Assembly (NCBI GenBank): GCA_029953675.1
Contig: JAMWBK010000001.1
Location: 3,720,001-3,784,000 of the forward strand
Source: Rhodosorus marinus CCMP1338
Taxonomy: Eukaryota; Plantae; Rhodophyta
Direction: 5' to 3'
Length of the DNA stretch: 64,000 nt
A program made the position numbers and the translations under genes. A model generated the notes under the pieces. It ran no database searches, had not been told where the DNA came from, and saw only the letters and a list, made by a program, of their open reading frames with translations. This document shows positions 14,430 through 62,745 of this stretch, piece by piece (within the stretch, counting starts at the first letter, position 1; each line of letters opens with the position of its first letter).

Positions 14430-16740
14430 GTAGGTGGGGCCGGGCCGTTTCGTTGTTACCACGGAGGGTTAGCTTGACTCCTGCACGCTTGTTCGCAATC
14501 AGCCCTGCCCATGATCCCAGCCGTTTCTCATTGTTTGCGGAATGCCCAGCGAGAGAACCCATCAATGACTCTAACGTAATCGCCGGTGGGAAACAGCGAA
14601 TTCTAGTTACAGGCTGAAGAGAGAATGCTTCAAATGTGCCGGATAAGTAGTCGGAAGTCCATCGACTCGTTGTCACGCATGGTCACAATTGACAATGATC
14701 CATTACTGAAAGAATTTGCTACGAGAGACCTGCTCCGGCAATCGGTCGGCCAATTAACCTCCACCCTGGACTGGACAGTCAATAGCTCTGCATGCAGAGT
14801 TGCAAGAGCAATAGCGTGTAAATACTGATCAATTTTTGCTGTGGACGGTGAGGGAAAATTTAAGAAAGATATCCAAAACAATCGAGGGCAACAGCAACGA
14901 TTTATTCGGAGCCTATCTATCTACCCCGAGGCGCGGAACGGGAGACGCTGAAGACTCGCGTTCAACAACAAAGGTGAGGAGGGGTACCCGGTGAGGAGGC
15001 TGTCAAGGCGGCCGGGGGAATATCCCAAAAATACACTGTTTACTGGCTTCATTAGCTGGCTTTATTAGCTGGCTTTATTGGCTTTATTAGCATAGCCTAC
15101 AGCGCTACGGCTTTATTAGCTGGACTTTACTAGCTAGCCTAAAGCGCTACGCAAACCGTGAAAAGGAACTAAGAGCTAGGTAGGGAAGCGTGCAAACCCA
15201 GGCGCATTTGGCCTCGGCAAGCATGCTGCTCGAATATCGCCACAGAGAGGCCACAAATGTTCCAAGTATTCGACAGGATGCTCAGTGAAACATTTCCGCA
15301 ACCACTCCAAACCCGCCTTCTCCACGTGACCAAAGCTTTCCACAGAGAAAGGCTGGAACCGGTGGGAGCGACCCTCAGCGCGAGGCAGATTGGCCGTACT
15401 CTCAGCATACCGTCGTTCCTTCACGCGGCGAAGGGCCGAAGCAGCTGCTCCCCGGCGGCGGGCGGCAGCCGTGAGATGGGCGCTTGCCACAGGGCATGTA
15501 ATCAGGAGGTCAACATATGCTGAGCGTCTGGCGGCAGCATCGGAGACGAGGAGATCTGCGATACAGCGGGGCGGTGCCCTATCCGAGACCGATCTGGGTA
15601 GTTCCGATTCTACCTCAACTTTATGCCCTACCCGAGTCAAACATTCGCTGAGAATGTACTTGAAGCGAGTGTGAAAGCCGTTTACTTGCGCTTTCCCACG
15701 AGCTCTTCAAACGACCTAACTGAAGCGGTTCTCTGCTTGGTAACAGTTCCCCACGAACTCACCACCACTCTGGTCCACGTCAAGATAGATCGAAAGTTGT
15801 GCGTGACCTTACAGAGACCAATACAGAGGCTAAAAAAGAAAAAATGGCTTGTCACAACCCCGAGCATCGAGCTGCGAAAAGAACTGTCTCCAACGGACCT
15901 CTTGCGTCAGAAAAGTAGGACAATTCACGAAAGCACTCCTGGTCAATCAAACGCATCCAGTCAATCATTATCATGATCTGTGCGATCGGGAGCTGGCAGG
16001 GAAGACAATTTCGTTCCGTTTTAGGATGATTCGGTTGAAGAGGCAAGCTATCAGACAAGGTCCTACGATAGGTGACTGAACTGTTTGAATCTGGACTAAC
16101 CTAAATCATTGACACTCTGGGAGCGCTTACATGTGCGCTCTGGAACGGGAACGGCCTTCTCGCGTTCGCGATTGGGGTTCCGAGTAGTCTGGGGCCCACT
16201 CGCCAGTTTGTGCCGCGTGGTCACGAGCGTGCTTGAAGGCGACTTTCAGGCGATCTGGAAAGCTCTTGAAACAAAAGCCTCTGGTGAGATAGGCATCACC
16301 AAATGGACCCGAATCGAACAAGAAACAGTAGCGATGGCATCTCAGCCGCGTTTCACGCGCTTCCCGCCGACTTCAGGCCACCAGAACTGGCACTGCGCAC
16401 AAGGGCCACCTGGTGAAGATTCGCAGGGCTGTTCGCAATGACGCGTTTGAGGAGTCCCCCTTCCAGTATGTTATCGAGGCAGCCCTACAGGCTCCCCTCT
16501 CCCAGGACAACGACCCCTCAGGCGAGGTGGAAGGCCAGCCAAGGTGCAGATGCAGGCGTACTGGCGATCGCCCATCTTCCCAAAGGCACTGCTCCGGCCC
16601 TAGCGGACTCCGAGCAGAACACCTCCAGGGTGCCAATCAGGACGTCCAGATGGCTATGATTCGCGTCCTCCAGCAACTAGCTACCAAGCCAGAGAAGTTT
16701 GGCCCCTTATCGCAACCATGAACGCTTTACAACAGAACTC
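14430..16740 (+). mobile_element. Degraded CRE-like non-LTR element (family C-like), interrupted by a family-A insertion
   Basis: 16413-16721 (SGPSGLRAEHLQGANQDVQMAMIRVLQQLATKPE) closely matches 58517 (SPGPSAMRAEHLQGANQQTQVALIRVLRQLATAPE). Assignment of 14430-16100 to the same element is tentative. Confidence 0.5.
15045..15674 (-). mobile_element. Family A CRE-like element, 5'-truncated (endonuclease + reiterated 3' tail)
   Basis: IADLLVSD..AYVDLLIT..KERRY..FQPFSVESFG; flanked by GTTTACT at 15038-15044 and 15680-15686 (AGTAAAC TSD on the element strand). Confidence 0.9.
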
Positions 16741-16759
16741 ACTAGTGGAGCCCGTCAAG

Positions 16760-17470
16760 ACTGAACAAGGAATCTAGCTATGCGTCAAAATACCCCTAAT
16801 GGGTTGTGTGGCTACGTTCTACTAGAGGGGCGATCTCATAGTTCCCTCCCAGGCGCGCCGTCAACTCGGCCTCCTGGAAGGCAAGTAGTGCATTCCCTTT
16901 CCACAAGGACCGGTGAGCGTCGCGCGTGCTCCGCTGACTTGTGATGATGGGTGCTGCAGGTGCAGTGTGACAAATTTCAAATACTGATCGGCTTGCTTCC
17001 CCATCCTCCCGATCGTTTCCTGGCAGAAGGGCACGAAGATGTCGTCATTATGTGCCCTGATCGCATCCCAGTATTTTGCTCTTTGAACACGTCTCTGCCA
17101 TGTGTGCAACGTACCCGGTCTGAGAGGACGGTTTATCTGGGCTTATCTAGGTAGGTCTTTTGTAGCGGTGCTGTCACCTTCACGTCGATCACGTACAGCT
17201 TCCCGGTCCGAGGGTGGAGAGCTAGAATGTCTGGGCGAAGGTGGCTGCCTGGCTAGTGTCCGGTCGGTTCAAGTGTCACCTCCAGCTCAGACAATGTAGA
17301 CTCGGAGGGAAAGTGCGGATTCTCGTTTTTGTTATTGGGTGCAAAGCTATTTCTAGTCCGTGTGAGGAGGATTGGTGCTGGTGTGTCCCTCTTGCAAGGC
17401 TGCGTTTTCGATGCAGTCTTGCTTCAAGGAGCTGTTCTCGTAGTTGTTGAGTCGAATAACCCCACACTAA
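16760..17470 (-). mobile_element. 3' fragment of a family C-like CRE element (RLE domain), decayed
   Basis: Frameshifted HLRPDILALHPRTGKLYVIDVKVTAPLQ and RAKY..FVPFCQETIGRMG, similar to LRPDTVARHPRTKQRYALDVTVV..FIPIAIETFGRTG at 61.5-61.7 kb. Confidence 0.75.
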
Positions 17471-18250: not shown

Positions 18251-18414
18251 GATAGTAACCCACAGTCCGTGTTCTGAACCACTACGCTGATGTCAACTTG
18301 TTTTCTTCCCTCTCAAAAACTATGCCAATTCGAGTTCTGTTGCTCCGGCATACCTTGCCGGAGAAGCTCGTGGTTTGGAGAGCATTAATATTATCAAATA
18401 CACTTAACAATAGA

Positions 18415-18735
18415 ACTAAATCTAAACAGGTAGAGGGCATTGGGAAGAAGTATAGCAGTATTTCATTTCGCATAGCAAGCAACACACCAGCAAGCAGTAT
18501 TTCACTTCGCTCTGTGAGGAACTGCGGAAAGCCCTATCGGATGCTGAAATTAAGGACATGGAAGCTAAAACACCGGTGCAGTTGAAGGCTCACAAGATCG
18601 GGGAGCTCGATTCCATGAAAATGGTCACAGGAGCAAGTAGGAAGAGAAGGGTGAAAAATTAGGTTTCCCACTAGCAGCAAGGTGCATTGTCATGTCGTAG
18701 TTGTCAAGAGAATGAACTGGAAGAAGTGACCAAAG
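18415..18735 (+). pseudogene. Decayed partial duplicate of the 5' part of gene 20464-21861
   Basis: tctaaacaggta..ggaaagccct..gatgctgaaattaagg..cagttgaaggctc.caagatcggg.agctcgattcc matches about 20514-20690, with indels. Confidence 0.8.
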
Positions 18736-18844: not shown

Positions 18845-19072
18845 ACTTGGCATAAGCCTAATAATAGAGTACGGCTAAAAATCAGGATGTCCGCGCTCAC
18901 CGATTAAATGAAAACAATTCATTGTATTTGTCCATAGCGTTCCGCGTTCCGCAGGGGTTAAACAAAATTAATCTTAGCAACAGAACTCGAATTGGCTTAA
19001 TTTTTGAGCAGCCCAGGAAAACAAAAAGACATGAGGGTGGCCACCGCCAAGAACGGACCGCAGACATTGGAA

Positions 19073-19254
19073 TGGGCTTTACTGGGCTTTACTACATAGA
19101 CACTGGAATAGCATCTCTGCCTAGGTGGATCCGGGAGACCAGCCGCTGACTCCGTATTTCTCGTAGCTCGAGGCCCCGGGGTGCGCGGGGTTAAGCGTGA
19201 TCGCTTCCCTAGATAGTGATCGAACTAGTCTTGCGCTGCATTAGGCAGCCGCCC
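19073..19254. mobile_element. Two back-to-back retrotransposon 3' tails (minus-strand tail ending in (AGTAAAGCCC)2; plus-strand family C tail)
   Basis: ccctagatag..ttgcgctgca.taggcagc.gcccagtaaa matches about 61959-62011. The minus-strand piece resembles A-type tails. Confidence 0.65.
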
Positions 19255-20463: not shown

Positions 20464-21861
20464 TTGGGCTTTAGGTTTGGAAAGCATCAACTACAATCAA
20501 CAGCAGATCGAAGTCTAAACAGGTACAGAACACTGGGAAGAAGCATGGAAAGCACTTTTGAACACATGAGCAGCAGTTTTTTTGCTCTGGAGGAGCGGCG
20601 GAAAGCCCTCTCAGATGCTGAAATTAAGGCCATAGAAGCTGAAAGACTGGTCCAGTTGAAGGCTCGCAAGATCGGGGAGCTCGATTCCAAGAAACTACAA
20701 GCCGCCCATGGACTTGAGGTCGCGGGTAAGCACCTCAATAGGGCGAAGCGCAAGGGCCTGAGGAAAGTTTTCCGTAGGAGCAAGTATGAAGAGAAGGTTG
20801 AGAAGTGGACGTCCAACTGCACCAAGGAAGAGAGTGAACTGGAAAAATTGACTGTGCAAATTGCTGCAGAGAAGGAGGACCAAGCTAAGGCGCTGCAACG
20901 GCTTAGCCTGGCCAAGCAAACTCTGGCAGAGAAGAACTCAATCGACGAGCAAATCAAGAGCATACTTGAGCAAGCATTCCAAGGTTTCTCAGGCGACATG
21001 ACCGAGAACCAATGCGAGAACCGTCGCAACCTCTTGCGGGATCAATACGAGAGAAGCCTCTCCATGGCCAATGACCCAAGAAGGGCCCTTGAGCACCTCA
21101 CAAATGCCTTCGAAATCATGCAGGAGGCCCATGGGAAGCTCAAAACTGCCCTTAAGATGAACACCTACGACCTCCTATCATCCAATAGAGAGCGAGAGAT
21201 GTACGGACCACCCGGCCAGCCACTAGCGCCACAACCCATGGGGCAGGCGTTTATGGGACAGCCCTGCAATGCTGGAGCACAGGGGATGAACTTTGGAGCG
21301 CAAGGAATGGACTTTGGAGGACAGGGAATGAACTTCGGTACGCCTGGGTATTCTGGATATGGTGGATACGGAGTGCCTAGGCCCCGTGGTGGTATGTTCG
21401 ATGACACAAACATGATTTCAGCGTACACCAGCTTGCAGACAAACGAGAATATGAAGGCCGCGCGGTCACTACTGGAGCAAGCTAATGAGGAGTTCACGCG
21501 CGCACTGGAGTTCAACCCGAATCTTCCTGAAGCGCGTGCGGTCACCGTCGGCCTATCAGATCTCCTCTCCTTCGCGAACGTCCTGTATGACAACATGCTG
21601 ACCGATTTTATGGTCCGCAGCAAGGTCAAGGAAGCACTGAGAGCAGCTGACGACGCCTTGAGAAGGTGTGAGGCGGCTTACCGATTCCAAATGTCCTGCT
21701 GTGAAAGGGCGGACGAGGAGATAAATCAGAAGAAGCTGGCTCTTGAACAAGCCGAGAAGGAGCTGGAGTCCGAGCGCGTGCGTCTTATGCACCAGTGGCA
21801 GTTCAAGAACCAGACAAGTGGGGCACCGCCATCCGTACCTCCATCTGTGGTTGCCTGCTAA
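20464..21861 (+). CDS. Coiled-coil protein of unknown function with a G/F/M/Q-rich low-complexity insert
   Basis: 465-aa open ORF, likely starting at MESTF; paralog of 8795; three 21-nt repeats encoding QGM(N/D)FG. Confidence 0.8.
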   Translation: MGFRFGKHQLQSTADRSLNRYRTLGRSMESTFEHMSSSFFALEERRKALSDAEIKAIEAERLVQLKARKIGELDSKKLQAAHGLEVAGKHLNRAKRKGLRKVFRRSKYEEKVEKWTSNCTKEESELEKLTVQIAAEKEDQAKALQRLSLAKQTLAEKNSIDEQIKSILEQAFQGFSGDMTENQCENRRNLLRDQYERSLSMANDPRRALEHLTNAFEIMQEAHGKLKTALKMNTYDLLSSNREREMYGPPGQPLAPQPMGQAFMGQPCNAGAQGMNFGAQGMDFGGQGMNFGTPGYSGYGGYGVPRPRGGMFDDTNMISAYTSLQTNENMKAARSLLEQANEEFTRALEFNPNLPEARAVTVGLSDLLSFANVLYDNMLTDFMVRSKVKEALRAADDALRRCEAAYRFQMSCCERADEEINQKKLALEQAEKELESERVRLMHQWQFKNQTSGAPPSVPPSVVAC

Positions 21862-21989: not shown

Positions 21990-22795
21990 GCGAATGAAAT
22001 TATTTAATCGGAGACGGAAAGAGAAAAGCCCGAGGGGAAAAACAAGACTAAGCGTGGCGAATATTCGCGCGCCTCCAACATCAAAGCAGCGTTCATAACC
22101 GACAGCAATAAACTTAAACATGTAAACTACGAGGACAGACGGTCAGGGCGTTCGCGGAACACTTCCCGAAGCTGACGAGAGCCAACGGAATCCAGAAACC
22201 CAAAGCAGCGCAATGACTAGAGGTACCAGGAGATGATCTAGAGCCAAAGCACGAATGCATGCGGGAGATAAAACCCCCGCATATTTCAACTCTTTGCGAC
22301 GTCTCATACTGGCAGCGGCAAATTCACGGGGCCTCCCACAGCCGGCAAGTAAGGGCTAACCTGGGACTAGGAACAGCAAGATCACCGTACGTCGTGACGG
22401 CGGCTATCGTCACAGTGACCCACGAGGTCCAGCCACGCGGAGTTCATCATTCTGGTACGTGTGCCACAGGCAGGGGCTTCTCACGTTCAATTTCAAGACC
22501 GGCTTGCCGCACGATAGGTCAAAGTTCGCGGTATAACGGGTTCAAGATCCGAGCATGTCGTCGGGTTCGGGCGCCTTTCAGAGCGAGGCAGCTGGGGAGC
22601 AGGTGGGCGCCAAAATCCGCGGTAGCTTCGTTTTGAGAGCAAAGTGGGCACGGCGAACCCAGCTCGGAAGGCCAGGGCGGCTCATGCAAACCGAGGTATA
22701 AACGTAGAGAAGTGCGCACTTCGAAATCTGTCAGTGTGAGTGGCGGAAAAGCGGGGACGCTCATGAGCCACTGTGAGCTGATACACCCTGCCATT
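21990..22795 (-). mobile_element. Older family B subfamily, 5'-truncated (CCHC + RLE + tail)
   Basis: ISSQWLMSVPAFPPLTLTDFEVRTSLRLYLGL..CPLC..H..C..RRH; tail with cccgagggg flanked by A runs on the plus strand. Confidence 0.85.
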
Positions 22796-22933
22796 TGTTG
22801 CATTTGATAGAACCGATACTACCCTTGATCTTAGCCAAAAGGCCGAGAAGATAGTCCTTCCACTATGATCCATGCAGCAGCCGGGGTACAACAGCCCCAT
22901 GGACTCGTCACCTCCATCTTAACCCTCTTTACT

Positions 22934-25120
22934 GGACTTTACTAGCATAGCCTGAAGCGCTACGCAAGGCGTGAAGATGAACTAATAACTAGGGAGGGAA
23001 GCATGCAACCCCAGGCGCCGATGGCGCGCCTCGGAAAGCATGTCGCTGGAATATCGCCAAAGGGAGACACTTAAACGCCTCAAGAGCGCCAAATATTCAG
23101 TAGGATGCTCAGCAAAACATTTCCGCAACCACTCTAAACCCGACTTATCCACGTGACCAAAGCTTTCCACAATGAATGGCTGGAACCGGTGAGAGCGACC
23201 CTCAGCGCAAGGCAGACTGGCCATGCTCTCAGCATACCGTCGTTCCTTAACTCTTCGAAGGGCTGAAGCCGCGGCCCCCCGGCGGCGGGCGGCTGCGGTG
23301 AGGTGGGCGCTGGCCACGGGGCAGGTAATCGCAAGGTCCACATATGTTGAGCGTCTGGCAGCAGCGTCGGAGACGAGGAGATCGGCTATACAACGGGGCG
23401 GTGCAGAGTCCGAGATGGATCTGGGCAGTTCCGACTCAACCTCAACCGTATGCCCTATCCGAGTCAAAAATTCGCTGAGGATGTACTTGAGGCGAGTGTG
23501 ACGCCTCGTACGGAGACCTCGCAACAGTCCGCAGGAACCCAGGAAGTGGTAGCCACAAGCGTCAATCCGGCTCTCACATCCCTGACAGAAAGACGGCCGA
23601 TTAGAGTGCCACGGAGCCTGTGGCAAACCGAGATAGATCCGTGCGGCAGAACGGAACTGGAAAGCATCGAGACGATGACTCAATGACGACGGTAGAGTGG
23701 TTAACCACAAGTGCGAGAGGTGGCCTCCCATGCCGCGGAGACGAGCGGCAGTGGTAGGCGGCGTGAGAGGAGAATTGAGCATGACTGTGTGAGCGGCACT
23801 GTGTTGGCCCCAGGTGAGGCTATGTTGAATTACATCAGCGCGGGAGCTCCACAATCGGCTCAAACCCGGGTAGTCTGCAACAGGGGACCCGGGGCTAGCC
23901 TCTCCGTCATCGGCAAGAACTCGGTCGAGGGGACAATCCTCAATCGCTTCAGCTCGTCCCCATATCAGCTCCCTCCAGGAATGAAAGCGGGACCGATTTG
24001 CGTCCGGCACGGCGTTGCACCTCCTGAACGCGTGTTGAAGACCATCATAAATTGTCAAAAGCGGGGGCGGCAGGGTCACTGGATCCTCGTTGGTCAAAGC
24101 TCGAGCCAAGAGGCAGGCACTTCGCATCTGGAAGGTCACCAACGTTCGCAGCGCGGTAGCCCAGGAGGCAACCGCCGCTGGCGAGCATACCAGCCCACGG
24201 TCTGCGACGCCGAATCCCCCTAATCGCAACGGTAGAGCGATCTGTGCCCGAATTAAGTCCCTGTCGGGAGCAGCTTCAAGATCGAGGGGCTCATCCAAGA
24301 GCGTTCCCCAGTGTTGCAGGGTCATTTCGTCGGCTTTAGCCGCGATCCACGAGCCCCAAGCTGGAGGCAGGCTGCGCAACCAGTAGTTGAGTCTGGGACC
24401 GGCACAAAAGCGGGAAAGCAAGCAGGCCGATTGCAGCATGCTGTCGGGTAGGTGCTCAATGGCGTCGGTGAGTTGCTTGTGCCGTGCCAAAACTCGCTCG
24501 CAGGATGCTTGGACAAAGTTGTCAGTCCCCAATCCGACGCCGTGGTGTTCGAACCCTTCACGTTCACTGATTAGTCGCAGCGTGGGTGGCAGAGAGTTCA
24601 GCGACACGTCCCTCGCGGGGAGAAAGCGACATTTTTCTGTTTCCACAGTCAAACCGACGCGACGTGCAATCGCTTCGATCGCGGTCAGTCCCCTAGCCAG
24701 GGTGTCAGGGGTGCCCAGCAATGTTACGTCATCGTGGTACGCGCAGATTCGAAGATCCGAGACCTCAGTCGAAAGACGTAAAAGTACGAGCTGTAGGGCA
24801 CAGGCATGAAGAAGAGGTCCGCAAGGGTCGCCTTGTTGGACGCCAGTATGTGCTTGAAAAACAGTGCCCTCCGTTGTCAAGTAGGGGAGGCTCTCCCCTC
24901 CGTAAATACCCGATAGAAACGGCCACGCCTCCGGAAACACACGTCGGAGCACCTCTAGCGCATGCGTCCGCGACACGCTGTTGAATGCGTTCCGGAAATC
25001 AACCACCAAGACTCCCCACTCCGGCCTACTGGCGCGTTCTAGCTCGATCCCATGGGTGATCAGTTCGCAACCCCCAGAAAATCCCACCCCTACTTGCAAG
25101 GGCGCCATAAAAGCTAAGGA
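22934..25120 (-). mobile_element. Family A CRE-like element, 3' part (RT core, CCHC, RLE, tail)
   Basis: Open 708-aa ORF 22982-25108: VDFRNAFN, GVQQGDP, AYHDD, CQGC..H..C, RH, IADLLVSD..YVDL..KERRY; tail ends AGTAAAGTCC|AGTAAAG. Confidence 0.95.
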
Positions 25121-25372
25121 AAAACAGTTTTTGGTTTCGTGAGGGTGTATGGTGCTGGCTTTTGGTGGTTTTGAGTCGCAATTGTGTTCTTCGGTGGGAG
25201 GCGCTTCTTTCTGCAGCCTTTCCCCCGCATCTTCTAGTGGTGTGGTGCGTGCTGGGGGTTGCTAGCGCCCCTTGGAGGTCATGGTGGTTTTTCTTTGGTT
25301 GCAAACGTTGGGAACAAGTTCTCTTTTTGGGGGTTTCGTGGAGGAATCGGTTTTTCACACCTTCCAATCGTT

Positions 25373-26670
25373 ATGGTTGGGGTTTCCCCACCCATTCCGG
25401 CGGACGGAGCCGTTCTCTCAGCGCGCGTGGAGCTCTGCGTGGGCGGGTTTAGTACCGCGGCCACCCTCACGGACTGCGCTGACGAGTTAGCCCATGGGAT
25501 CTGCTCGAAACTGACGAGTCTTCTTGTGACTGCTTCCCAGGAACACCGCCTGCCCCTGCTGATCGCCTATTTGGAGCGCTTCTCCGCCTCCGCGCCTGCC
25601 CCATACCCCCGGTGCCCGTCCCCGCGGATCCGCACGGTACAGCGGGGCCTGCCTCCACCCGACCCGAGCGCTCCGCTCCGGTCATTCCTGATTCCGACTG
25701 GCCTACCCCTATTCAAGGACAGACGCCTCCTGGGCCCGCGTCGGGCCCGAATCCTGCTCCCTCCAGTGCCCCACGTGCGACCTATTCGCAGGTCCTACGC
25801 AGGGGCTCTTCTGAACAACGCACGACGGCAATGGTGCGTATGATGCCACAACACATCCCTATTGACTCTTCTCGCCAACTATCTCCGTTCCACTTTGTTT
25901 GGATGACGAACGTGCGTCCCCAGACCCCCTCTCGTGGTCGGGGCCGCGCGCCCGTCCACTACCGCGATTTTCGCGACACCATGGCTTCCTCCCTTGGGGT
26001 CGCCCCGTGTGAATTCCTATATGTGGACTTCACGGGCCCTCATGCCTGTTTTCTTGTTACTGACTCGGCTTACCAGTTCCTTCAATCGCTTGTAACCACC
26101 CCCGCGCCCCAGCGCTCTGCTCTGGCCAACATGATACTGACTCGTCCTCATGTCTCTTTGCTTGTTGAGTTCGATCGTTTTGACGCCGGCTGGGTTCCTC
26201 CGTCGGCCTTGCAAAACCTGGATGCCTCGCAGGCTTCGGTTGTCGCGCTACACACTCATGCGGCGCGGCTCTCGCGCATACAGGCGAGCCTCTTCGCGCG
26301 TTTTCCTCCTCGCGGGGTCCTCCGCACCACGCTAGAGGCCTTCCTCTCCACTGAGGCCACCCTGCTGGAAGCTCACCCTGCGTTTGACCTTCTGCCGCCG
26401 ACTCTTGAGCACCCTTCCTCCCCTCGCCTTGTCTCCGAGGCTCGTGACACCGACATGGCAGAAGCACCATCGGCCTCTCCGAATCCGCTGGCTCTGGACA
26501 CCCTCAGTCAAGACTCCGCTGCTGAAAACCCTGTGTCTACTTTCTTCAGGTCTTTTAGTTCCTTCGTGCGCCCTCCACGTAAGCGTCGTGCGGCTCCTGA
26601 GCCTCCCTCCGAGGCACCTCCTCCGGATATTCGATCTGCCTTCCCGACTGAGGGGAGGCCCGATGTCTGA
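25373..26670 (+). CDS. Family B ORF1 (one frameshift in a C-run near 25606-25610)
   Basis: Pieces 25259-25843 and 25612-26670 join into the open ORF seen at 41884-43296. The likely start MVGVSPP matches subfamily B' MAGVSPP. Confidence 0.8.
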
Positions 26671-26716
26671 GTCTTCCTCCTCCGCGTGCGTGTCGTCCCG
26701 GTTACCCCTGTTTACC

Positions 26717-26839
26717 GAACGAACGAATGGTTTAATCGGAGGCTGAAAAAAAAAACCCCGAGGGGAAAAAAAGACTAAGCGCGGCGAAGTACTCGCGCCT
26801 CCAACATCAAAGCGGCATTCATGCGCCACAGCAGGAAAC
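26717..26839 (-). repeat. Inverted copy of the element's own 3' terminal about 123 nt
   Basis: Reverse complement of 29869-29992 with one mismatch seen; the same insert is at 41715-41838. Confidence 0.95.
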
Positions 26840-29800
26840 ACCCCAGTGACCGCTCAGCCTGGCATGAGCGTGTTCTCTCGTGGTTTTCGCACCTTGTCGC
26901 CTCCTACCCGGACGGTTCCCTTCCCCTTTGTCGTCAGAGCACGGCCGTACGGCTCCCTCGTCGACTTCATAAGCCCCTAGGATTGGTGTTGGATTTTCTC
27001 TGGCAGCAGGTCGCCGCGAACCCTCACTGCTCTCTTCGCTGGGAACTCTTGTTCTTTTTTCCCCGCCTCGTGCTCACCTCCTCTACCGTCCCCCTCAACC
27101 CACATCCTCGCCGGGTCCACCCTCGCCGAAAACTGCAAATGTTCCTCTCCGGCGACTTTGAGGACCTCGAACGTCTTTATTTCGCTTCTCTCTCTTCCTT
27201 TTCTCCTAGTGATCCCTCAGCTTTTAGGTCTTCTCGACAGAATCGGGCGCGTCACGCGGTGGCAGGCGGTGATCTGCGGCGGGCAGCCGGGATCCTCCAG
27301 CAGCGGCAACCTGTGGTTCCATACTCCGATGATCTTTCTTCACCGCTCCGTTTGCTCTTTCCCTCGGAAGGCTTCCCTTGGGACTCCTCGTTTGAATCAG
27401 TGTTGGAAGAGTACCGCGCCGCGCCACATCCCAGTGCGCGGTTAGTGGTCAATCTGGAGGCGGTGCGTGAGTTGGTTCATGATGCTCCGAAGGGCCGTTC
27501 CCCAGGGCCCTCGGGGCTGCGGGTGGAATATCTCCGTTTCTTAAGTGATGAAGGTTTGAAGGCGTTGGCGTGGGTGGTCGAAGCGCTTGTGAATGGTGAT
27601 CCCCTGTGTGAGTGTGCGTGGTTCTTGGTCGGGCGTTCTCAGTTGTGTCTGCTTTCGAAGCCCGGCCACACGGCCTCGAGCCCTGCTATTCGCCCTATTG
27701 GCCTGGTTGAGGTGGTCCGCAAATTGGCGGCGCGATGGTTAGTGAAAATCCTGGTTCCCGAATCCCGTCGTTTCTTTGGGCACGTGCAGTTAGGCGTGGG
27801 CTATCGTGGTGGCTGTGAGTTGTTGTCTGTTTTACTCCGTTCGGAAATGGCGTACTCCCCAGATTCTGGGCTCCTCTCTGTAGATTTTACCAATGCGTTC
27901 AACCGCGTCTATAGTCCGGCTCTCATGCACGTGGTGCGCGAAGTCTTCCCTGTAGGCTTTCCCTTTGTTAGTAGACTTTATTCTCCGCTTGGTCGTGGGG
28001 CTACCTATGACACCCTTGGCGCTTCCTCTCACACGTTTGCGGCGCGCACAGGGGTACAACAGGGTGATCCCTTGTCCCCTTTCCTACATGCCTGTGGACT
28101 ACAACTCGTCTTGCTTTGTCTTCGCTCCGAATTCCCGCAGGTTCGTACGGTTGCATACCACGACGACGTGTGCCTCCTGGGGCCCCCTGATACTCTAGCA
28201 CTCGCTTATGATCGTCTCCGCTCCTTGGCTTCGCGGGTTGACCTGGAGGTTAATCATCACAAATCGTTCTACTGGGGAGGTGTAGCTGCACAAGAGCAGC
28301 AGGTACCTGCGTCGTTCCAGGATATTTGGAGACCGGATGGTTTTGTCCACTTAGGCATCCCCTACGGGTCGCCGTCCTTCGTTGAAGGCGAGTTGCTGCA
28401 GCTCCTCGGTAAGCACAGACAGCTGGTTGCAGAGCTTCGACGGCTACCTCCGGGCTTTCTCCAGTGCTCGTTGTTGCTGTTTCGGTATTGTTGCAGTCAG
28501 CGGTTAACCTATTGGCTTCGCTCACTTCCAACTCATTGGGGCCGGTGGTTGGCCACTCGTGCGGATGCTGAAAGTTTCCGTGACCTGGGGTATTTTCTCG
28601 ATGAAGAGCTGAGCGCTCTGCCGCGACCCACCTGTGATGTTGTGCGCGCCCAGGTAGGCCTCCCATTGCGATTGGGGGACTGGGCCTCTGCAATCGTGTT
28701 GTGGTCCAACCTGCAGCCGCAGTAGGGGCCTGGGGAACCGCACTTCCCACTTTGAGCAGCTTGGGTATCTCGAAGTTCCGCAATTTGATGGCGAGCCTCT
28801 CGCGGGGTGTCTTGCTTCCCAGCGTACCGGAAAGCGCCCAAGACTTGTTTCTGGAGCTCCAAACCGCCCTGAATTCCTGTACTAGTCTCCCCGAAACCGT
28901 TCAACCCCGTCTTCCTGACTGGCGAGCTGTATTTGACCGCTCTCGAGGCTCCGCCCCGGGGATTCGTCCTGCGCCTGAACCTGTTCTAGGGGAGATTGAC
29001 CCAGTGGTTGCCGCAGAAGAAGAAGTTCCAGTTGATCCTCCTGATGATTCCCAGCGCGCTGGGAGCCGAGCTCAAGCACGCACGGATGCGCTGCAAAATA
29101 TCCTTTCTTGGGACTTGCACCGTGCTGCATATGGCCGACTCCTCGCGCAGATGGTCTCATCTTCTCGCGCTCGCGCCCGCCTACGTAGTCTTGGAGGGGT
29201 TATTAGCTCTCAGTGGCTCATGACCGTACCAGCCTTTCCGCCACTCACACTGTCGGATTTCGAAGTGCGTACTTCACTGCGCTTATACCTCGGCTTACAT
29301 CAGCCCCCTTGGCCGTACGAGATGGGTTCGTCGTGCCCTCTCTGCTCTCAGACTGAAGACAACGCAGATTTTGGCGCCCACCTGCTCGCTAGTTGCCCGG
29401 CGGTGAAAGGTGCTCGAACCCGCCGCCACACACGGATCTTGAACCTGTTATACCGGGAACTTCGGCCTATAGTCCGGCAAGCCGGTCTGGAAATCGAACG
29501 TGAGAAACCTTTACCCGTCGCGGACTTTCAAAATGATGAACGCCGTGTAGCCGACCTGGTGATCACCTGTGACGACAGCCGCCGTACCACATACGTTGAT
29601 CTTGCTGTTCCTAACCCTCAAGCTAGTCGTTATCTCCCGGCTGCGGGGGAGCGCCGTGGATCTGCCGCCGCCAGCATGAGACGCCGCAAAGAGATCAAAT
29701 ACGCGGGGGCTTTGTCTTCCCCTGGTGTTCGTGCTTCGGCACTAGCACATCGCTTGGTACCCCTGATCATTGAGTGCTTTGGGTTCATGGACTCTGTTGG

Positions 29801-29933: not shown

Positions 29934-29992
29934 TCTTTTGTTCCCCTCGGGGTTTTTTTTTTCAGCCTCCGATTAAACCATTCGTTCGTTCG

Positions 29993-39232: not shown

Positions 39233-39234
39233 GT

Positions 39235-43430: not shown

Positions 43431-43439
43431 ATTCGTTTT

Positions 43440-46070: not shown

Positions 46071-46126
46071 AAGGTTTCCACTGAAGGGAATCCGAACGCC
46101 TTTATCAGCAACAGTGTTGGCGTCTC

Positions 46127-50098: not shown

Positions 50099-50665
50099 TA
50101 CTTCTTTTTACTCTCTAAACGCTCTAGTGACAATGTTTTCCTCATCTCTCTCGTCCAAGCCTGCCTTGCTTGTCTCCCCTACCAACTCGACCTAGAGCTT
50201 TGCCGACAAGTTTTTCTTGTGTGAGATTCTTATGTCCAATCTCTGGTTCAAGGGAGAATCATATATATACCCAAACGCTAGTGTTCACTTTCTTTTACTT
50301 GAGTTGTTTTCTTCCAAATCAATAAGGAGGGCACACCAGAGCGGTGGCCAAGAATGCATCGTTGTGATGTGGGGTAGCCTCCAACACCCGCCACACCCCT
50401 GCACACCCAAAAGGTTCACCCTGACATTTAGCAAACGAGCGTAGATTTCATAGCGATAATGGACAGATTAGCCCAACTGATGATCAAGTTGCGCAACAGT
50501 GCAAAGGCTGGACCCCCCCCACCCTTTTCACGTCCTCAATCTGGACGGGTTGCCACACCGTGGACAGTTGAAGTTTGATGTGGAAATTCTTCCCTAACGA
50601 AGATAAACAGTGCGATGGCTAGGCTCGTAGGATATTGAATCAGTTGGTTGCAAACCATCTCTACT

Positions 50666-50687
50666 GGACTTTGCTAGCCTGAAGCGC
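50666..50687 (-). mobile_element. 22-nt family A tail-only insertion
   Basis: ggactttgctagcctgaagcgc flanked by CTCTACT at 50659-50665 and 50688-50694. Confidence 0.7.
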
Positions 50688-51140
50688 CTCTACTAGCCTG
50701 TATTTTTTGTTGATAGCATATGACAGCCTGTCACCCGGTTCTTTCCCCCCCCAAAAAGCTTGAGGATAGACTATTAAAAACATTAAAAGCCATTACTTAT
50801 TATTATTTCAGTTCGATTGAGAGAATCATATACTCCATTAAATAAACGAATTCATAATATTTTATATTAATTACCGAAATAATGACCCGTATAGTTTAAA
50901 TATTTATTTTAGACAGTTTTCTGTTGTTATGAATTGTAATAGATTAGTCGATTTCTGCGAGAAGATTTTTTTTCTCGAACCGCTGGAGTTCGCCAAATCT
51001 CCGGTGCTTTTGTTCTCCCCAGAGTGGAAGAACAGGGGAGGGTTTAAGATCATTACGTTATTCCCATATTGAATGAATTTCTAGTGGTTTCTGGTTCTCC
51101 CCTCAGCGGAATTTGTTGTTAGGACCCAAGTTGCTATAAA

Positions 51141-54700: not shown

Positions 54701-56464
54701 AACCCGTGGAGGAGGATGACGCGGTACTTCGAGAAAACAGCCAAGTTTGACTATGAAATCAAACACTTACCCGGCCGAATGAACTTCGTAGCAGATGCCC
54801 TATCGAGACAAGATATGGGAGAAGATCTCGAGGTGGGCAGTAGTCACGACGGAGTGTTGGTTGAAGGATTATGCTAGCCAAAGACAAGAATTCAACAAGT
54901 TGCCTGAGGCAGAGAATAGATTGGTCCAAGAGGAAATGGAAGGAGTCGTCCCGGACGAAGCAACCGGAATCCTGTATTGGGAAGCTGAGGGAATACGTAC
55001 CCACTGGCTAGCGCCGGAGGATCACAACGATCTACTGGCGGACGCCCATAAAGCACTAGGACATCGGTCCGCCCGCGCGCTATACGAACAGCTGAGGTCC
55101 CGATGTTACTGGAGAACCTTGAGGAAAGAGGCGGGAAGCAGTCCGAAAGTGTGCGGGTGATCAACTGCACCAGATACCGGCTCCCCAAAGGAGGTTGGCG
55201 CCAAAACACCCACTGCCGACGGAGGCCTTGTTTTTTAGGTGGCATATCGACTTCATATGGCGATTGCCGACGACGCCACGAGGGAACAGATGGATTCCCA
55301 TAGCTGTGGAAAGCCTCAGTCGCTGGAGCCTAGTGAGGGTATTGTCTGAGGCAACCAAAGAGAACGTCGCGAAGTTCATTTATGAGGAAATAGTCTCAAC
55401 GTATGGAGCCCCGGTCCAGATAATGTCAGATCGTGGAGCTCAGTTCCGATCGGCGGTACTGGCGGAATACCTGAAGTTGTTGCCAACCAAGCAAGTATTC
55501 ACGTCCGCCTATCACCCACGGACTAACGCGACAGCCGAACGCTGGAATCGTACTTTCCAGGAAATCCTGGCGCAGTACACAGGAGGCATGGTTCGTAGGT
55601 GGGACCAGTTCGTTCCCCAAGCGAATGCTGCTATGCGTCTGACAGTCAATCGTAGCACAGCAAAGACCCCTTTCGAACTACTCTACGGAATTCCTGCGCG
55701 GATACCGGGTATAGATCACGCACCTCTTCTGTTCGATGCGAGCGAAGAGAATACGGCGGTTCGAGCTCGAGTTGAGGAGTTAACGGGCCCAGGGCGTATA
55801 CGCGAGGCGGAAAACCTCAGCGTAGAGGATGCGAAGACACAAAACGCCAGTACTATAATGCGCTGGTTACCCTGACCCGTTAGTAGTTGGTACCTGGGTG
55901 CTGGTGAGAACGAAACGAAAACGATGGGTCAGTCCCGATTTTTCGGACCCTTTAAGGTGACCGAGGTGATGATCTTCGACACTTACAGACTGGAACATCC
56001 AAAAGGCAAGCGAGAGCCTACCCTTGTTCACCGAGACCGACTACGCCGAGAACTACGGAGGGCGATGTTGCGAAGTGGTGGACCCCGCCTGCACGCCGAG
56101 AGTTAGCAGAATTAGTGGGCGATGAACTCAAGGATTCACCGACTACACAGGGCCAGTAAGTGGGAGAACAGGGGGGTATGAAAGAACCAAGTGACAGCCT
56201 GTATCTAAATGAAGAACTTTCTAGAAGCTAAACTGATTAGATTTAGCATTTGCTGGGCCGGAGAAACTGGTCGATAAATACCGTAGATACGACTTATTTA
56301 TTGGTTAGAGAAAGAGAAGAGAGGACACAACAAGGTTAAATGGGGAATAGATTTAACAAGTGTCGTCTAGAGCTAGACTAATTAAAGGAAGGAAGTTCAT
56401 TCCTTTGAGAAAAGAAAGTGTTGTGATATTGGGCATGGGGCCAAATAAGTCGACCTTAGATGCA
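51781..56464 (+). mobile_element. Ty3/gypsy element 2, decayed, with both LTRs
   Basis: Diverged LTRs start TGAA(G/A)GAACCAAGTGACAGCCTGT at 51781 and 56179; PPT gggagaacagggggg. Frameshifted gag, PR (LVDAGA), RT (APFGL, YLDD), RNase H (TDAS, DALSR), IN (WHIDF, SDRG, SAYHP, GPF). LTR right ends are approximate. Confidence 0.95.
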
Positions 56465-57189: not shown

Positions 57190-58290
57190 ATAATTTGTTT
57201 AGTCGGAGACTGAAAGAAACAACCCTGAGGGGAAAACATAGACTATATGCGGCGAAGGTCGCGCGTCTCCGACATCGACGAATGGTTTAATCGGAGGCTG
57301 AAAGAAAAAACCCCGAGGGGAAAAAAAGACTAAGTGCGGCGAAGAACTCGCGCCTCCAACATCAAAGCGGCATTCATGCGCCACAGCAGGAAACTTAAGC
57401 GGGGAAACAACGATTGACGACGGTCAGGGCGTTCGCGGAACAACTCCCGAAGCCAGCGAGAACCAACAGAGTCCATGAACCCAAAGCACTCAATGATCAG
57501 GGGTACCAAGCGATGTGCTAGTGCCGAAGCACGAACACCAGGGGAAGACAAAGCCCCCGCGTATTTGATCTCTTTGCGGCGTCTCATACTGGCGGCGGCA
57601 GATCCACGGCGCACCACCACCACCACCAAAGCATGCGTTTATATGCCACAGCAAGAAACTTAAACGGGGTAAACAACGAGAACAGACGGTCACCGAACAA
57701 TTCCCGAAACCAACGAGAACCAACGGAATCCATAAACCCAAAGCACTCAATTACCAGAGGTCCAGGCGATAAGCTAGAGCCGAAGGACGAATGCATGGCG
57801 AAGAGAAAGCCCCCGCATATCTCAACTCAGAGGGGAAAAAAAGACTAAGAGCGCGAAGATCGCGCCCTTCCAACATCAAAGCATCGTTCATACGCCACAG
57901 CAAGAAACTTAAACGGGTAAACAACGAGGACAGATGGTCAGGGCGTTCGCGGAACAATTCCCGAAGCCAACGAGAACCAACGGAATCCATAAACCCAAAG
58001 CACTCATTGACCAGTGGTACCAGGCGATGAGCTAGAGCCGAAGGACGAATGCATTGGGAAGACAAGGCCCCCGCATACTTCAACTCTTTGCGACGTCTCA
58101 TACTGGCAGCGGCAAATCGACGGCGCTCTTCGCAGCCGGCAAATAACCACTAGCCTGAGGACTAGGAACAGCAAGATCAACGTACGTCCTACGACGGCTA
58201 TCACCACGGGTGACCACGAGGTCAGCCACTCGGCGCTCATCATTTTGGTAGTCTGCGACAGGCCGGGGATGTTTGCGCAGGTCATTGTCC
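57190..58290 (-). mobile_element. Stack of family B 3' ends of different ages
   Basis: Young B fragment about 57283-57612, with a (GGT)5 5' junction, sits inside an older B-type 3' end. The older element also has an internal tandem duplication of the YAGA.SS..SVGSRW segment. Confidence 0.85.
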
Positions 58291-58579: not shown

Positions 58580-61500
58580 CGATGGGATGCCACAAAAGCC
58601 GCTGATGAGGGTCTCCTGTCGATTTTGGCACGTCTTCCACAGGGCAAGAGCCCAGGACCCAGTGCAATGCGCGCGGAACATCTCCAAGGCGCCAATCAAC
58701 AGACGCAAGTGGCTTTGATCCGCGTACTGCGACAACTAGCGACAGCTCCCGAGGAGTTTCCCCCTCCGCTGGCGCGTTCCCCGCGTAGCAGCAGACTACT
58801 ACCATTCGCGAAGCCACGGAAGGACTCGGCTCCCCAGGAAAACCCAGGCGTTCGGCCCATCGGCGTCCCTGAAGCTCTACGAAAAGTGGCGACTCAATGG
58901 ACCCTTCGCGCGGTGATCGACAGGGTGCCACGCTCCTGGTGCCATTACAACTAGGGATCGGAGTCAGTGGCGGATGCGAACGCTCACGTCACGCGATCCA
59001 GGCCCATCTGTCATGTGAACTAGACGCGGTGGTGCTTAGGCTTGACCTCGAGAATGCATTCAACAGGATTGATCGACGCCTCGCCAAGAAACTCGTGGAC
59101 CACCACTTTCCGGAGCTTGCGGCGGTTTACAGACTTGGGTATGGAAGCGACGCAGTGGACTCGCCGACGCTTTGCGGCTGGCGCTCGGTACCTGGAGAGA
59201 ACCAAACGGAACACTCACGACTGACGCTCCAAGCAGCTACGGGAGTACAACAGGGAGACCCTCTTGGGTAGGTGCTACATGCACTAGCACTCGCACCGTT
59301 CCTAAAAGTTCTACGAACAAATTTCTCCGATCTAACGATTGTCGCTATCCATGACGATATTACGATCGTGGGACCACTGCAGGAACTGAAGCAAGCACTA
59401 GTCTGGAGCCGAACTATGCTCCCCCACAGGGCGACACTCACACGCCGTAAAAGCGCCAAGTACTCAGTAGGATGCTCAGCTAGCTTCTAGTAGAACGAAT
59501 TCAACATAGCCTCACCTGGGGCCAACACAGTGCCGCTCACACAGTCATGCTCAATTCTCCTCTCACGCCGCCTACCACTGCCGCTCGTCTCCGCGGCATG
59601 GGAGGCCACCTCTCGCACTTGTGGTTAACCACTCTACCGTCGTCATTGAGTCATCGTCTCGATGCTTTCCAGTTCCGTTCTGCCGCACGGATCTATCTCG
59701 GTTTGCCACAGGCTCCGTGGCACTCTAATCGGCCGTCTTTCTGTCAGGGATGTGAGAGCCGGATTGACGCTTGTGGCTACCACTTCCTGGGTTCCTGCGG
59801 ACTGTTACGAGGTCTCCGTACGAGGCGTCACACTCGCCTCAAGTACATCCTCAGCGAATTTTTGACTCGGATAGGGCATACGGTTGAGGTTGAGTCGGAA
59901 CTGCCCAGATCAATCTCGGACTCTGCACCGTCCCGTTGTATAGCCGCTCTCCTCGTCTCCGACGCTGCTGCCAGACGCTCAACATATGTGGACCTTGCGA
60001 TTACCTGCCCCGTGGCCAGCGCCCACCTCACCGCAGCCGCCCGCCGCCGGGGGGCCGCGGCTTCAGCCCTTCAAAGAGTTAAGGAACGACGGTATGCTGA
60101 GAGCATGGCCAGTCTGCCTTGCGCTGAGGGTCGCTCTCACCGGTTCCAGCCATTCATTGTGGAAAGCTTTGGTCACGTGGATAAGTCGGGTTTAGAGTGG
60201 TTGCGGAAATGTTTTGCTGAGCATCCTACTGAATATTTGGCGCTCTTGAGGCGTTTAAGTGTCTCCCTTTGGCGATATTCCAGCCACATGCTTTCCGAGG
60301 CGCGCCATCGGCGCCTGGGGTTGCATGCTTCCCTCCCTAGTTATTAGTTCATCTTCACGCCTTGCGTAGCGCTTCAGGCTATGCTAGTAAAGTCCAGTAG
60401 AACGAGATCCCTGGACAGGGGGTTTGGAGTAAGTAGATGACGCTGCGAATGTTTGTGTAGCGTTGCGGTAGCTAGCTGCCGAATAAAGGCTATGGAAATT
60501 GCCAAGCTCCCACAACCGGAGCTTACGACGCAAATTGCCCTCTTCAGGTTCTGTGCAGAAACGCGACTAGACTATGTGCTACGATGCCACGCATACGAGT
60601 TTGGAAGAAATCTGGCACGCGAGGCCGACGTGATGACCAGATATCACCTGGAAATTCTATTCGGAGGCCTCGCTACGACAGCTGTAGAGGACGATGAGTA
60701 CGCAGAGCTGATCTCGGACCAAATCGCTCTGCCCTGCCGCTGGGGAGGTTTGGGTTTCGCTACTCGAAAGCGCGTCCAACCCATCGCGTTTTACTCGTCA
60801 TGGAGAAACACCTTCCGGAACAATGAAGATGAATGGCCATACCTGACTGAACTAGAGCGGGAGGTTACGGCAGAACGCTCACCAGACACATACGAGCCGA
60901 TGGATCAACGATGGTCGACTGCACAGCTGGCGGACCAGATCTGTGCGTCGTCGCGAGCAATACAACGGAGGCTCGGACCAGAAACCCCGCCGCGGATCTT
61001 GGCACTGACTACCCTGCAACAACCGCGAGAAACATCTCTTCGAAGCGCCCCGGGCGAGACTGCAGCTTGGAATAATGGTTCAATACAACAAACCCTCTCT
61101 CGAGAGGCACACCATTGCGCATTCCAAAAGCTGGTCACCAACCCACGAATCTCCCCTGAAAACCGAGCTCGAATACGGTCTGCCGCGGGATCCGGGTCGG
61201 GAGTCTGGCTACGTGAAATACCAACGCTGACAGCGAAAAAATTGAGTGCGGTTGAGATGCAGGTAAACGTTCGACAACTGCTGGGTCTGCCAATTCCGGG
61301 ATTGCGGACCACCGAGAAGTGCACTAGTTGCCGGAGTAAACACGGAAGGACTGGGGTACAACGGTTTCATCACTGCCCAACATCAACTGGACTGTGGCAA
61401 CGTAGGCATGACGAAATCTGCAGAGAGCTGGCACGGTGGCTAAGGCGATGGAACTTCATGGACGTAGAGCAAGAACCTGAGGGGTACTTTGAGAACTACG

Positions 61501-62006
61501 GACTGCGACCTGATACCGTTGCTAGGCATCCGAGGACCAAACAAAGGTATGCGCTGGATGTGACGGTGGTGTCACCATTACAGGGAAAATATTTGCGGCG
61601 GAGCCAAGATGATAGCGGATACGCGGCGAGAGCTGCGGAGAAGTGGAAAATCGCTCACTACAAAGAAGCGATGGTGATCGAGAAAGCGGATGATAAGTTC
61701 ATCCCGATAGCAATAGAGACGTTTGGGCGTACGGGGCAAATGGCACAGGAGTTCCTCCGGGACAGCTGCAAGCACTTACTGCACAGGAGTGAGGAGCTGA
61801 GAGACGTGAGATCCCAGATAAACCGGCAACTATGGCGAGGTAACGCAGAGATAGCATTAGGCGCTTTGCGCGTGGACCAGCTGGAGAATCCGCTGGTACC
61901 TGTTTTTTCTTTTGAACGTAGCATGAGACCCCGCTCAGCGGGGTTCCAGTAAGTTTCTCCCTAGATAGGATTAGACGTAGTGTTGCGCTGCAGTAGGCAG
62001 CTGCCC
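58580..62006 (+). mobile_element. Family C CRE-like element, 5'-truncated, interrupted by family A
   Basis: SPGPSA, VRPIGV, LDLENAFN, GVQQGDP, AIHDD; then ORF 60453-61952 with CTSC..H..C, RRHDE, LRPD..LDVTV..KIAHY, IETFG; tail ends GCCC|AGTAAAG. Confidence 0.92.
59499..60395 (+). mobile_element. Young family A 3' fragment inserted into family C RT
   Basis: Near-identical to 22934-23830; TSD AGTAGAACGA at 59489-59498 and 60396-60405. Confidence 0.95.
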
Positions 62007-62745
62007 AGTAAAGCTTACGGTTACGTAAGTCTCGGGTACCTTGTTCTGGGGTAAAAGTTGGAAGTTCGGAAGCCAGAAAAATATAATAGTGCGGGAGGTG
62101 CGTGGGCCGTACCCAGAGCCCATTCTTATCCCCGGTTCACCGGCACCGGGTGCCATGGAAGTGTTACACGCTCTCCAGCACCAGGCTGTAGGAGCAGATC
62201 AGGATCCAAGGACAACGACACCAGCTGCAGACGTTACGCAGCCGGGGAACAGGAATGAGACTGATGCCACTAATGACGCAGCTGCCTCTTTCCTGCAACA
62301 GTTGCGCACCTGTGACCAGTTTTGTCACGGTGTGGGCATTGGGAAAGAAACAGTCGAGGAGGTCTACAAGGCGATTTTTAAGTTGTACTCCCGTATTGGG
62401 AGCACCAGCGACCGTGCACTATGGCGTGGTACAGCCCGCTTAGCGATCCATGCCCTGCGCAAAGCTAATCATGTTCGGACAATGTTCCCTGTTCAATGTA
62501 GTCTTCTATCCCGCTCTGGGATCTCCTTAGCCTAGCCCATCCTGCTTTCGTACCGTATTCTCTAGGTCTACATTGGGTAGTTGGAATGAACGGTACAAGT
62601 TGGAAAAAGAGGAGCAACCTTCCGAGTTCCTTTTTAATCATCACAGGGAAAATATATCAAACGCTTTCTACACCCGGCCACTTTATATTTTCAAGTTTTG
62701 GGCTCCAGGTTACCATCCTGATCTCGGACGACTTCCGCGAATCAG

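Follow-up and report, generated by a model that had tools for sequence, protein, structure and literature searches.

Retroelement nest and its families

What do retrotransposons that pile up inside one another recognise in their target DNA? The question is raised by a nest of such elements in a 64-kb stretch of DNA, here called the window, from Rhodosorus marinus CCMP1338 (assembly GCA_029953675.1, contig JAMWBK010000001.1, record positions 3,720,001–3,784,000). The assembly represents the nuclear genome of this red alga (PMC10250338), and the window lies about 22.6 kb from the contig end. Between 15 and 62 kb, the window is occupied by the nest, which is built mostly of elements without long terminal repeats (non-LTR), in which a CCHC knuckle and a restriction-like endonuclease (RLE) come after the reverse transcriptase (RT). 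An earlier, sequence-only reading of the window had proposed that three divergent RLE families, A, B and C, share an (A)GTA(A/G) target. According to the present analysis, families A and B probably integrate through target-primed reverse transcription (TPRT) at a short asymmetric (A)GTA(A/G) motif, the nest being the product of three related RLE lineages. The sample comprised the window and the 9.9 kb past its right end (locus L002), with about 19 A/B-type 3′ junctions. Families were delimited by self-comparison and a tblastn map, and element ends were re-derived as the points where near-identical copies diverge. No publication on Rhodosorus retrotransposons was found in a literature search.

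The reference copies are A1 and B1, one nested in the other. The 3′ part of A1 (22933–25121, minus strand) contains the C-terminal half of the RT and the CCHC/RLE domain in a 708-aa open reading frame (ORF), and its 5′ part (29993–30537, minus strand) carries the N-terminal region of the RT and takes up the A1 frame again on the far side of the B1 insertion. The full-length B1 (25122–29992, plus strand) encodes ORF1 (25612–26670) and ORF2, the latter with RT (26821–28725) and RLE (28701–29933) parts and a single disruption, a frameshift within the G5 run 28674–28678, which may be a long-read assembly error. The Pfam domain RVT_1 was found in A1 (E = 5e-13; 22982–25108, minus strand) and in B1 (E = 1.4e-10; 26821–28725). 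The best PDB matches of the A1 protein over the RT were R2 retrotransposon proteins (9nl3, 9dou and 9nl2; E = 3.5e-11), and 9nl3 gave a second, weak alignment (9.9 bits) over the CCHC/RLE segment CRHC...RHN...PDL...VDV. In an alignment of the C-terminal domains, CxxC..H..C, RRH, (P/A)D, D and K..Y are invariant across A, B and C, and family C is a member of the same RLE group as the other two. Amino-acid identity is 35–43% between A and B and 26–27% between C and either of them. The RVT_1 domain, the R2 structure matches, the invariant motifs and the low identity between families all bear out the description as three divergent RLE families.

No LTRs are present, and a Pfam search revealed no APE, RNase H, GIY-YIG or recombinase domain in the A and B elements. 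The copies range from 12 bp to 4.9 kb, are often 5′-truncated and have common 3′ ends, with the tail words AAAG[TC]CC in A, CCGATTAAACCATTC in B and GGCAGCYGCCCAGTAAA with the GGTTACGTTAGTC units in C. The N-termini were checked for domains in B only, those of A and C being absent from the window. Pfam found no Exo_endo_phos domain in B1 ORF1 or ORF2, which means that there is no N-terminal APE endonuclease. The N-terminal 290 aa of ORF2 contain two Cys residues only and have no zinc-finger Pfam match, ORF1 has no zinc finger, and no Myb or zinc-finger motif was found in ORF1 or the N-terminus of ORF2. Judged by their architecture, the elements are RLE-type (early-branching, R2-like) non-LTR retrotransposons. 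An inverted 129-bp repeat in B1 brought a Penelope-like or DIRS identity into consideration, and this was rejected, since a nested B fragment in antisense orientation accounts for the repeat, and the C-terminal domain has proved to be an RLE, neither a GIY-YIG nuclease nor a tyrosine recombinase.

When the A1 ORF and the B1 RLE ORF served as protein queries, no relatives from Rhodosorus were returned; the best match showed 34% identity, and the B1 query gave none. The closest proteins in a database of 5.8 billion clusters are unnamed and at most 34% identical, and the contig of the best relative (P0001) has no usable junction. In a metagenome collection, an exact scan with the B tail gave no match, and the A tail followed by GTA gave six chance matches, none of them similar to the elements.

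A common motif at the 3′ junctions of families A and B

The copies A1 and A2 (99.3% identical) share the end ...GCTAGTAAAGTCCA and then diverge, into GTAAAGAGGG and GTAGAACGAG, respectively. Similarly, B1, B4 and Bfrag (98–100% identical) end with (TTCG)n, followed by GTGAAGG, GTAAAAAAG and GTAAACAGG. The tail of B1 is (TTCG)3 with the 3′ flank GTGAAGGCGC. Bfrag is a 124-bp B 3′-end fragment (26716–26839, minus strand) placed antisense in the spacer between ORF1 and ORF2 of B1, with the 3′ flank GTAAACAGGG. B4 (38806–39233, plus strand) is a 428-bp B 3′ fragment with an ambiguous junction, either TTC|GTAAAAAAG or TTCG|TAAAAAAG. The 3′ flanks of A are GTAAAC, GTAAAG, GTAGTG, GTAGAG, GTAGAA and GTAACC, and those of B are GTAAAC, GTAACC (twice), GTGAAG and the ambiguous G|TAAAAA.

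Altogether, GTA(A/G) stands directly 3′ of 9 or 10 of about 19 recognisable A/B-type ends, a count that takes in old degenerate copies and exceptions, and GTG is found at one more. The background frequency of GTA(A/G) is 0.53% of the window positions, which corresponds to a binomial P of 3e-16 to 2e-18. All 13 junction strings quoted in the sequence-only reading were found where it had placed them, as were its two exceptions: that at about 21990 is the flank of the copy Bx, and that at 57283 is the tail of B5 abutting the 5′ end of B6. It had overlooked the junctions of a tiny A-type insertion at 19074–19097, of A6, of A7 and of B6, and had not noticed that the length of A4 and A5 is only 22–23 bp. 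Families A and B have a common short (A)GTA(A/G) insertion motif, which is strong in young copies and not absolute.

Target-site duplications

A motif at the 3′ junction can belong to the target or to the element, as its last bases or a transduced flank, and the A tail itself contains AGTAAAG, resembling a captured junction. The two origins are distinguished by target-site duplications (TSDs). Seven insertions are bracketed, exactly at their homology-defined boundaries, by TSDs of 7–11 bp that open with (A)GTA(A/G). In family A, the 5′-truncated copy A3 (15045–15679, minus strand), whose tail consists of chained A-tail fragments of 9–30 nt, is flanked by AGTAAAC (15038–15044 and 15680–15686). 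The 897-bp A2 (59499–60395, plus strand), nested in the family C copy C1, is flanked by AGTAGAACGA (59489–59498 and 60396–60405). The tail fragment A5, 22 bp long (50666–50687, minus strand), lies between two copies of AGTAGAG (50659–50665 and 50688–50694), and the 23-bp A4 (38146–38168, minus strand) between AGTAGAG (38169–38175) and, with one mismatch, AGTAGTG (38139–38145). The fifth case is a 12-bp A tail (38619–38630) between copies of AGTAACCCTGT (38608–38618 and 38631–38641). In family B, the 246-bp 3′ fragment B2 (34326–34571, plus strand) is flanked by GTAACCGAG (34317–34325 and 34572–34580), and the 111-bp B3 (38497–38607) by AGTAACCC (38489–38496 and 38608–38615).

Since the motif is present within the TSD at the upstream boundary, it is target DNA for A and B. 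The possibility that it is absent from the 5′ TSD copies was thereby checked within the window, and the 5′ copies of A and B carry it at all seven insertions. From copy to copy, GTA is followed by different bases, and an uninterrupted frame of the B2 host contains GTAACCGAG only once. An element-encoded GTA is refuted for A and B and is very improbable as a general account; it is true, as described below, of family C. In the A family, an A precedes GTA in the upstream TSD copy in 5/5 cases, so that the word is AGTA(A/G), nicked before the A or before the G.

The host of B2 is B′ (31645–35357, plus strand), a divergent B copy with about 70% nucleotide identity to B1. Removal of B2 and of the duplicates restores an open reading frame of B′, ...GLGLCNRAVIQPAAVV... 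(...TGTAACCGAGCT...). At the homologous place (28689–28698), B1 reads TGCAATCGTG with no insertion, and this uninterrupted paralogous copy is the closest available counterpart of an empty site for B2. A further motif copy is found at a B-type 5′ end: AGTAAAACGAAT stands directly upstream of the 5′ end of the inverted twin of B1.

A third copy of GTAACCGAG (34591–34599) results from a 19-bp tandem duplication, CTAGGCCT(T/C)TGTAACCGAG (34307–34325 and 34581–34599), which ends at the same base as the B2 TSD and may itself be the TSD of an attempted insertion in which no element sequence was added. The interpretation of AGGCCTCT at 34583–34590 as an 8-bp insertion was rejected, the tandem duplication better explaining its upstream similarity. 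Two longer-range TSD candidates, CCAGTAGTG at 38467, which would imply a 313-bp A4, and GTAGAGATG at 53970, which would imply a 3.3-kb A5, are probably chance matches; the short copies with adjacent 7-bp TSDs fit better.

The site at 38489–38641 (plus strand) hosts B3 and the 12-bp A tail in the order AGTAACCC, B3, AGTAACCCTGT, A tail, AGTAACCCTGT, and now contains three copies of AGTAACCC. As both insertions go back to one original site, two families picked the same nucleotides independently. Reuse of this kind also bears on a different explanation of the junctions, namely that the elements prefer existing element junctions, nicks or local DNA structure and that the motif is inflated by site reuse and by insertion into related elements. 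Many events do adjoin or lie inside other RLE elements, and the A6/A1 and B5/B6 boundaries are reused as well as 38489–38641. At least eight distinct contexts nevertheless carry the motif (15038, 22932, 26715, 34317, 38139, 38489, 50659 and 59489); the flanks after GTA(A/G) are unrelated among them, and some are outside any element tail, which makes the explanation by reuse quite improbable.

Family C carries AGTAAA within the element

The supposed common target does not extend to family C. The sequence-only reading had placed C junctions with AGTAAA(A/G) at 19255, 31432 and 62007, and these are not true junctions, the shared sequence continuing past those at 31432 and 62007. The copy C1 (58637–62045, plus strand; RT 58637–59403, RLE ORF 60453–61952) is interrupted by A2, and a fourth copy, C4, which is 95% identical to C1, lies within the 9.9 kb past the right end of the window. 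The identity of C1 and C4 runs through window position 62037, 30 bp past CCCA|GTAAAG. The more diverged 3′ fragment C3 (31400–31644, minus strand), which contains position 31432, has the same continuation of about 25 bp, GGTTACGGTTGCGGTAGTC, its tail going on as GGTTACGGTTGCGGTAGTCAAGGGG. In C4, this continuation forms a tail-like tandem array of three repeats. Hence, C1, C4 and C3 share 25–30 bp past CCCA|GTAAA, and AGTAAA is element-encoded in C. The remaining quoted junction, at 19255 in the 3′ fragment C2 (19060–19290, plus strand), reads CCCA|GTAAAAAACG and is probably internal. The true C junctions, without a clear GTA, are 30–70 bp farther downstream; the 3′ end of C1 lies past 62037, not at 62007.

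Past this tail in C1, C4 and C3, the same strand continues in each case with an A-like element's 5′ part (62040–62745; L002 5544–6474, minus strand of the locus; 30562–31399), and the protein-level identity among these A-like parts is only about 40%. The arrangement suggests that A-type elements preferentially insert just after C tails, or C elements just before A-type 5′ ends. The A-like element next to C3 is A6 (30562–31399, minus strand), a divergent copy with 69–82% amino-acid identity to A1 and the tail ...GTTAGTATAGCC.

Junctions that depart from the motif

Several observations weigh against a shared motif in A and B. The 3′ flank of B1 begins with GTG, without a visible duplication, and the junction of B4 is possibly TTCG|TAAAAAAG with a TAAAAAA duplication (38795–38801 and 39234–39240). 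A 24-bp A-type tail insertion in C2 (19074–19097, with flanks 19062–19109; minus strand) sits at a non-GTA site with a 12-bp duplication, ATTCCA(A/G)TGTCT. The copies Bx and B6, from an older B subfamily, both have TACAA as the 3′ flank, and a B-like copy outside the window has ACCC. Family C does not fit the shared target. The sample is small (about 19 junctions in 64 kb and 9.9 kb), with several junctions non-independent because of site reuse, and it is from the junctions only that we infer the probable nicking specificity. A nick before the A is not distinguishable from one before the G because the A tail ends with CC(A). Furthermore, the old copies A6 and A7 have 3′ flanks other than GTA, and no clean TSD was found for B1, Bfrag or A1.

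Bx (21992–22804, minus strand) is 5′-truncated, 80% identical to B1 and followed by (GC)TACAAACGC. Its 5′ side adjoins roughly the first 50 nt of a U2 small nuclear RNA (snRNA) gene (22805–22854, minus strand; Rfam RF00004, 46.3 bits).

Proposed integration mechanism and nesting

Integration of A and B at (A)GTA(A/G) would begin with a nick made by the element protein in the bottom strand opposite 5′-(A)|GTA(A/G)-3′, as the junctions suggest. Reverse transcription would then start on an RNA tail that is not poly(A) and that reads ...AAAG(T)CC(A) for family A and (UUCG)n for family B; the sequences of these tails and their variability are documented by the copies. A cut of the top strand 7–11 nt downstream creates the motif-initial duplication of 7–11 bp that brackets the insertion. 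Reverse transcription often aborts, as copies shortened to 12–23 bp show. Taken together, the abortive copies of 12–24 bp and the chained tail fragments (15045–15133) indicate that synthesis frequently ends early and either re-initiates or jumps between templates. Three very short A-type copies (38146–38168, 50666–50687 and 15090–15119) start at the same element position, after an internal GTA, ...GCGTA|GCGCTTCAGG....

It might be supposed that the motif reflects base pairing of the nicked target end with the 3′ tail of the element RNA, in other words microhomology-guided priming, and not the specificity of a protein. The A tails are built of G(CTA)(A/G)TAAAG(Y)CCA units, chained at 15045–15133 and 19074–19097, and the GUAAA of the RNA could base-pair with a target end ...TTTAC-3′. 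Such pairing is an unlikely source of the motif. GUA does not occur in the B tail, which is (UUCG)n after CCGAUUAAACCA, and still B has the motif, and even an identical site, in common with A. Moreover, A copies retain the full ...AGTAAAGTCCA before the target GTA; TCCA would have been lost had the internal AGUAAAG been the place of pairing. As the B RNA has no GUA near its 3′ end and A does not prime at the internal AGUAAAG, the motif is most likely read by protein, possibly the RLE or an adjacent DNA-binding surface. The lack of zinc-finger and Myb motifs in ORF1 and the N-terminus of ORF2 of B is consistent with a short word being read by the endonuclease region.

At the 5′ end, the enzyme would sometimes jump to another RNA, as a stretch of 18S rRNA on A1 suggests. 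The 19 nt at 30538–30556 (minus strand), AACCTGCGGAAGGATCATT, are fused to the 5′ end of A1 just after the A6 tail, A6 abutting this chimeric end. They are identical to the known universal 3′ end of 18S rRNA and stop at the mature terminus; Rfam did not report the fragment, which is too short. The stretch looks like the result of an end-to-end jump from the element RNA onto mature rRNA. Template jumps are a known property of R2-type RTs, a likeness between R2 and the elements studied here (PMC8594491). The U2 fragment at Bx could be due to insertion into a U2 gene with rearrangement, or to a switch of the RT onto U2 RNA.

Every insertion would duplicate the motif in the same orientation, and later A or B insertions would land there. 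Because the duplicated word is asymmetric, re-insertion keeps the orientation, which gives the same-strand chains C3-A6-A1-(U2)-Bx, B7-B8-B5-B6 and B3-Atiny. The sequence-only reading had attributed nesting to the AGTAAAG of the A tail, through which elements would create targets for one another; no insertion was found in any such AGTAAAG. The nests and tandem arrays are located instead within coding regions or where copies of a duplicated target have been used again, and reuse of the duplicated target explains the nesting better.

The chain B7-B8-B5-B6 is a head-to-tail series of four B-type 3′ fragments (57191–58277, minus strand) with the B6 flank TACAAGAAG. It looks like the outcome of serial template switches or of repeated insertion at one site. 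Two of its fragments have no tails and run straight into the next fragment.

Relation to known elements

Long interspersed nuclear elements (LINEs) that encode an RLE are mostly known as strictly site-specific (R2, CRE and NeSL/Utopia, with R4 for repeats), and their targeting is credited to added DNA-binding domains. To our knowledge, R2 is the only RLE LINE with solved structures. The elements of the window resemble it in the best PDB match over the RT, the weak match over the CCHC/RLE segment, the two-nick logic of TPRT and the frequent 5′ truncation. R2 reads a long unique 28S ribosomal DNA (rDNA) site by means of N-terminal zinc-finger and Myb domains, whereas the targets here are diverse and non-rDNA, and B has neither a Myb nor a zinc-finger domain. 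R2Bm makes a small target deletion, in contrast to the duplications of 7–11 bp made here.

L1-type APE LINEs prefer TT|AAAA, and their poly(A) tails pair with the T-rich nick. They are similar to the elements described here in a degenerate nick motif of 4–6 bp, duplications of variable length and 5′-truncated copies. The endonuclease, however, has the APE fold there and is of the PD-(D/E)xK type here, and for B there is no pairing of tail and target. With a shared word of 4–5 bp and duplications that begin with it, the A and B families are closest in behaviour to the short nick motifs of the APE-type LINEs.

Insertion is mostly site-specific in four RLE clades and mostly non-specific in HERO (PMC4640811). 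HERO, as described, is similar in behaviour only, its dispersed insertion resembling the short-motif insertion seen here; no published (A)GTA(A/G) motif for HERO was found. R4/Dong and Togen are microsatellite-specific RLE elements with short-repeat tails and targets (PMC4640811). The short-repeat tails are a common feature, but R4/Dong and Togen insert into tandem repeats such as (TAA)n or (TG)n, and the target here is a single word of 4–5 bp in unique or coding sequence.

The Utopia/NeSL clade has the same order of RT, CCHC and PD-(D/E)xK endonuclease, precise 3′ and variable 5′ junctions, and copies adjoining copies (PMC4640811). In crocodilian Utopia, the specificity is weakened to short U2-like words, e.g., TGTAGTATCTG (Kojima and Jurka 2015, PMC4640811). 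The U2 5′ fragment adjoining Bx is also Utopia-like. The 3′ flank of Utopia begins at U2 nucleotide 39, GTAGTA|TCTGTTC (PMC4640811), a register different from the |GTA(A/G) of A and B. None of the 3′ flanks in the window is U2; the sole U2 fragment lies 5′ of Bx and extends to about nucleotide 50. With Utopia starting at U2 nucleotide 39 and a Bx 3′ flank, TACAAACGC, that is not U2, membership in Utopia is not shown. Utopia also carries one to three N-terminal zinc fingers, and B1 ORF1 and the N-terminus of B1 ORF2 have none.

Tentatively, the RLE module itself may be a nickase that reads the 4–5 bp (A)GTA(A/G), kept across families with 35–43% identity and needing no N-terminal DNA-binding domain. 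It may descend, in relaxed form, from an ancestor that targeted snRNA or rRNA genes; this idea comes from the presence of the word in the GUAGUA region of U2 and from the U2 fragment adjoining one copy. Several divergent families sharing a nick word of 4–5 bp that is regenerated in the duplications make a simple case for locating the cleavage specificity of the RLE, and the case bears on how strict site-specificity relaxes or arises and on how head-to-tail arrays form. The nearly intact 4.9-kb B1 copy would permit direct biochemical tests.

Other copies and features of the window

The twin of B1 corresponds to its 5′ half (41016–43442, minus strand); it is inverted, 3′-truncated and 99.6% identical, and its 5′ flank ends with AGTAAAACGAAT (43431–43442). 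It carries the same Bfrag insertion (41715–41838). The presence of the antisense 124-bp fragment in both B1 and the twin indicates that a master copy with the nested insertion stayed mobile. Bfrag includes the first ATG of ORF2 (26821). The 5′ untranslated region and ORF1 of a copy of the B′ subfamily, B″, are found at 39296–40679 (plus strand). The old A-like fragment A7 (36942–37403, plus strand) shows 55% amino-acid identity and has the tail CTAAAACCA with a non-GTA flank; a perfect 190-bp tandem duplication (36649–37032; spacing 194 bp, 100% identity) adjoins it.

The nest also contains the pol region of a Ty3/Gypsy-type LTR retrotransposon, with protease, RT, RNase H and integrase (43596–46903, minus strand), and a separate integrase fragment (55195–55875). 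Ribozymes and tRNAs were looked for in the window and none were found. To the left of the nest, the 1–15 kb region has a genic look, with PPR-like, sulfotransferase and ankyrin ORFs, and to the right a 375-aa ORF (62746–63873) is an annotated gene in GCA_029953675.1. Within the nest, a 465-aa coiled-coil-like ORF (20464–21861) has its N-terminal part (20486–20694) duplicated about 2 kb upstream (18393–18620) with 76% identity, between C-like fragments.

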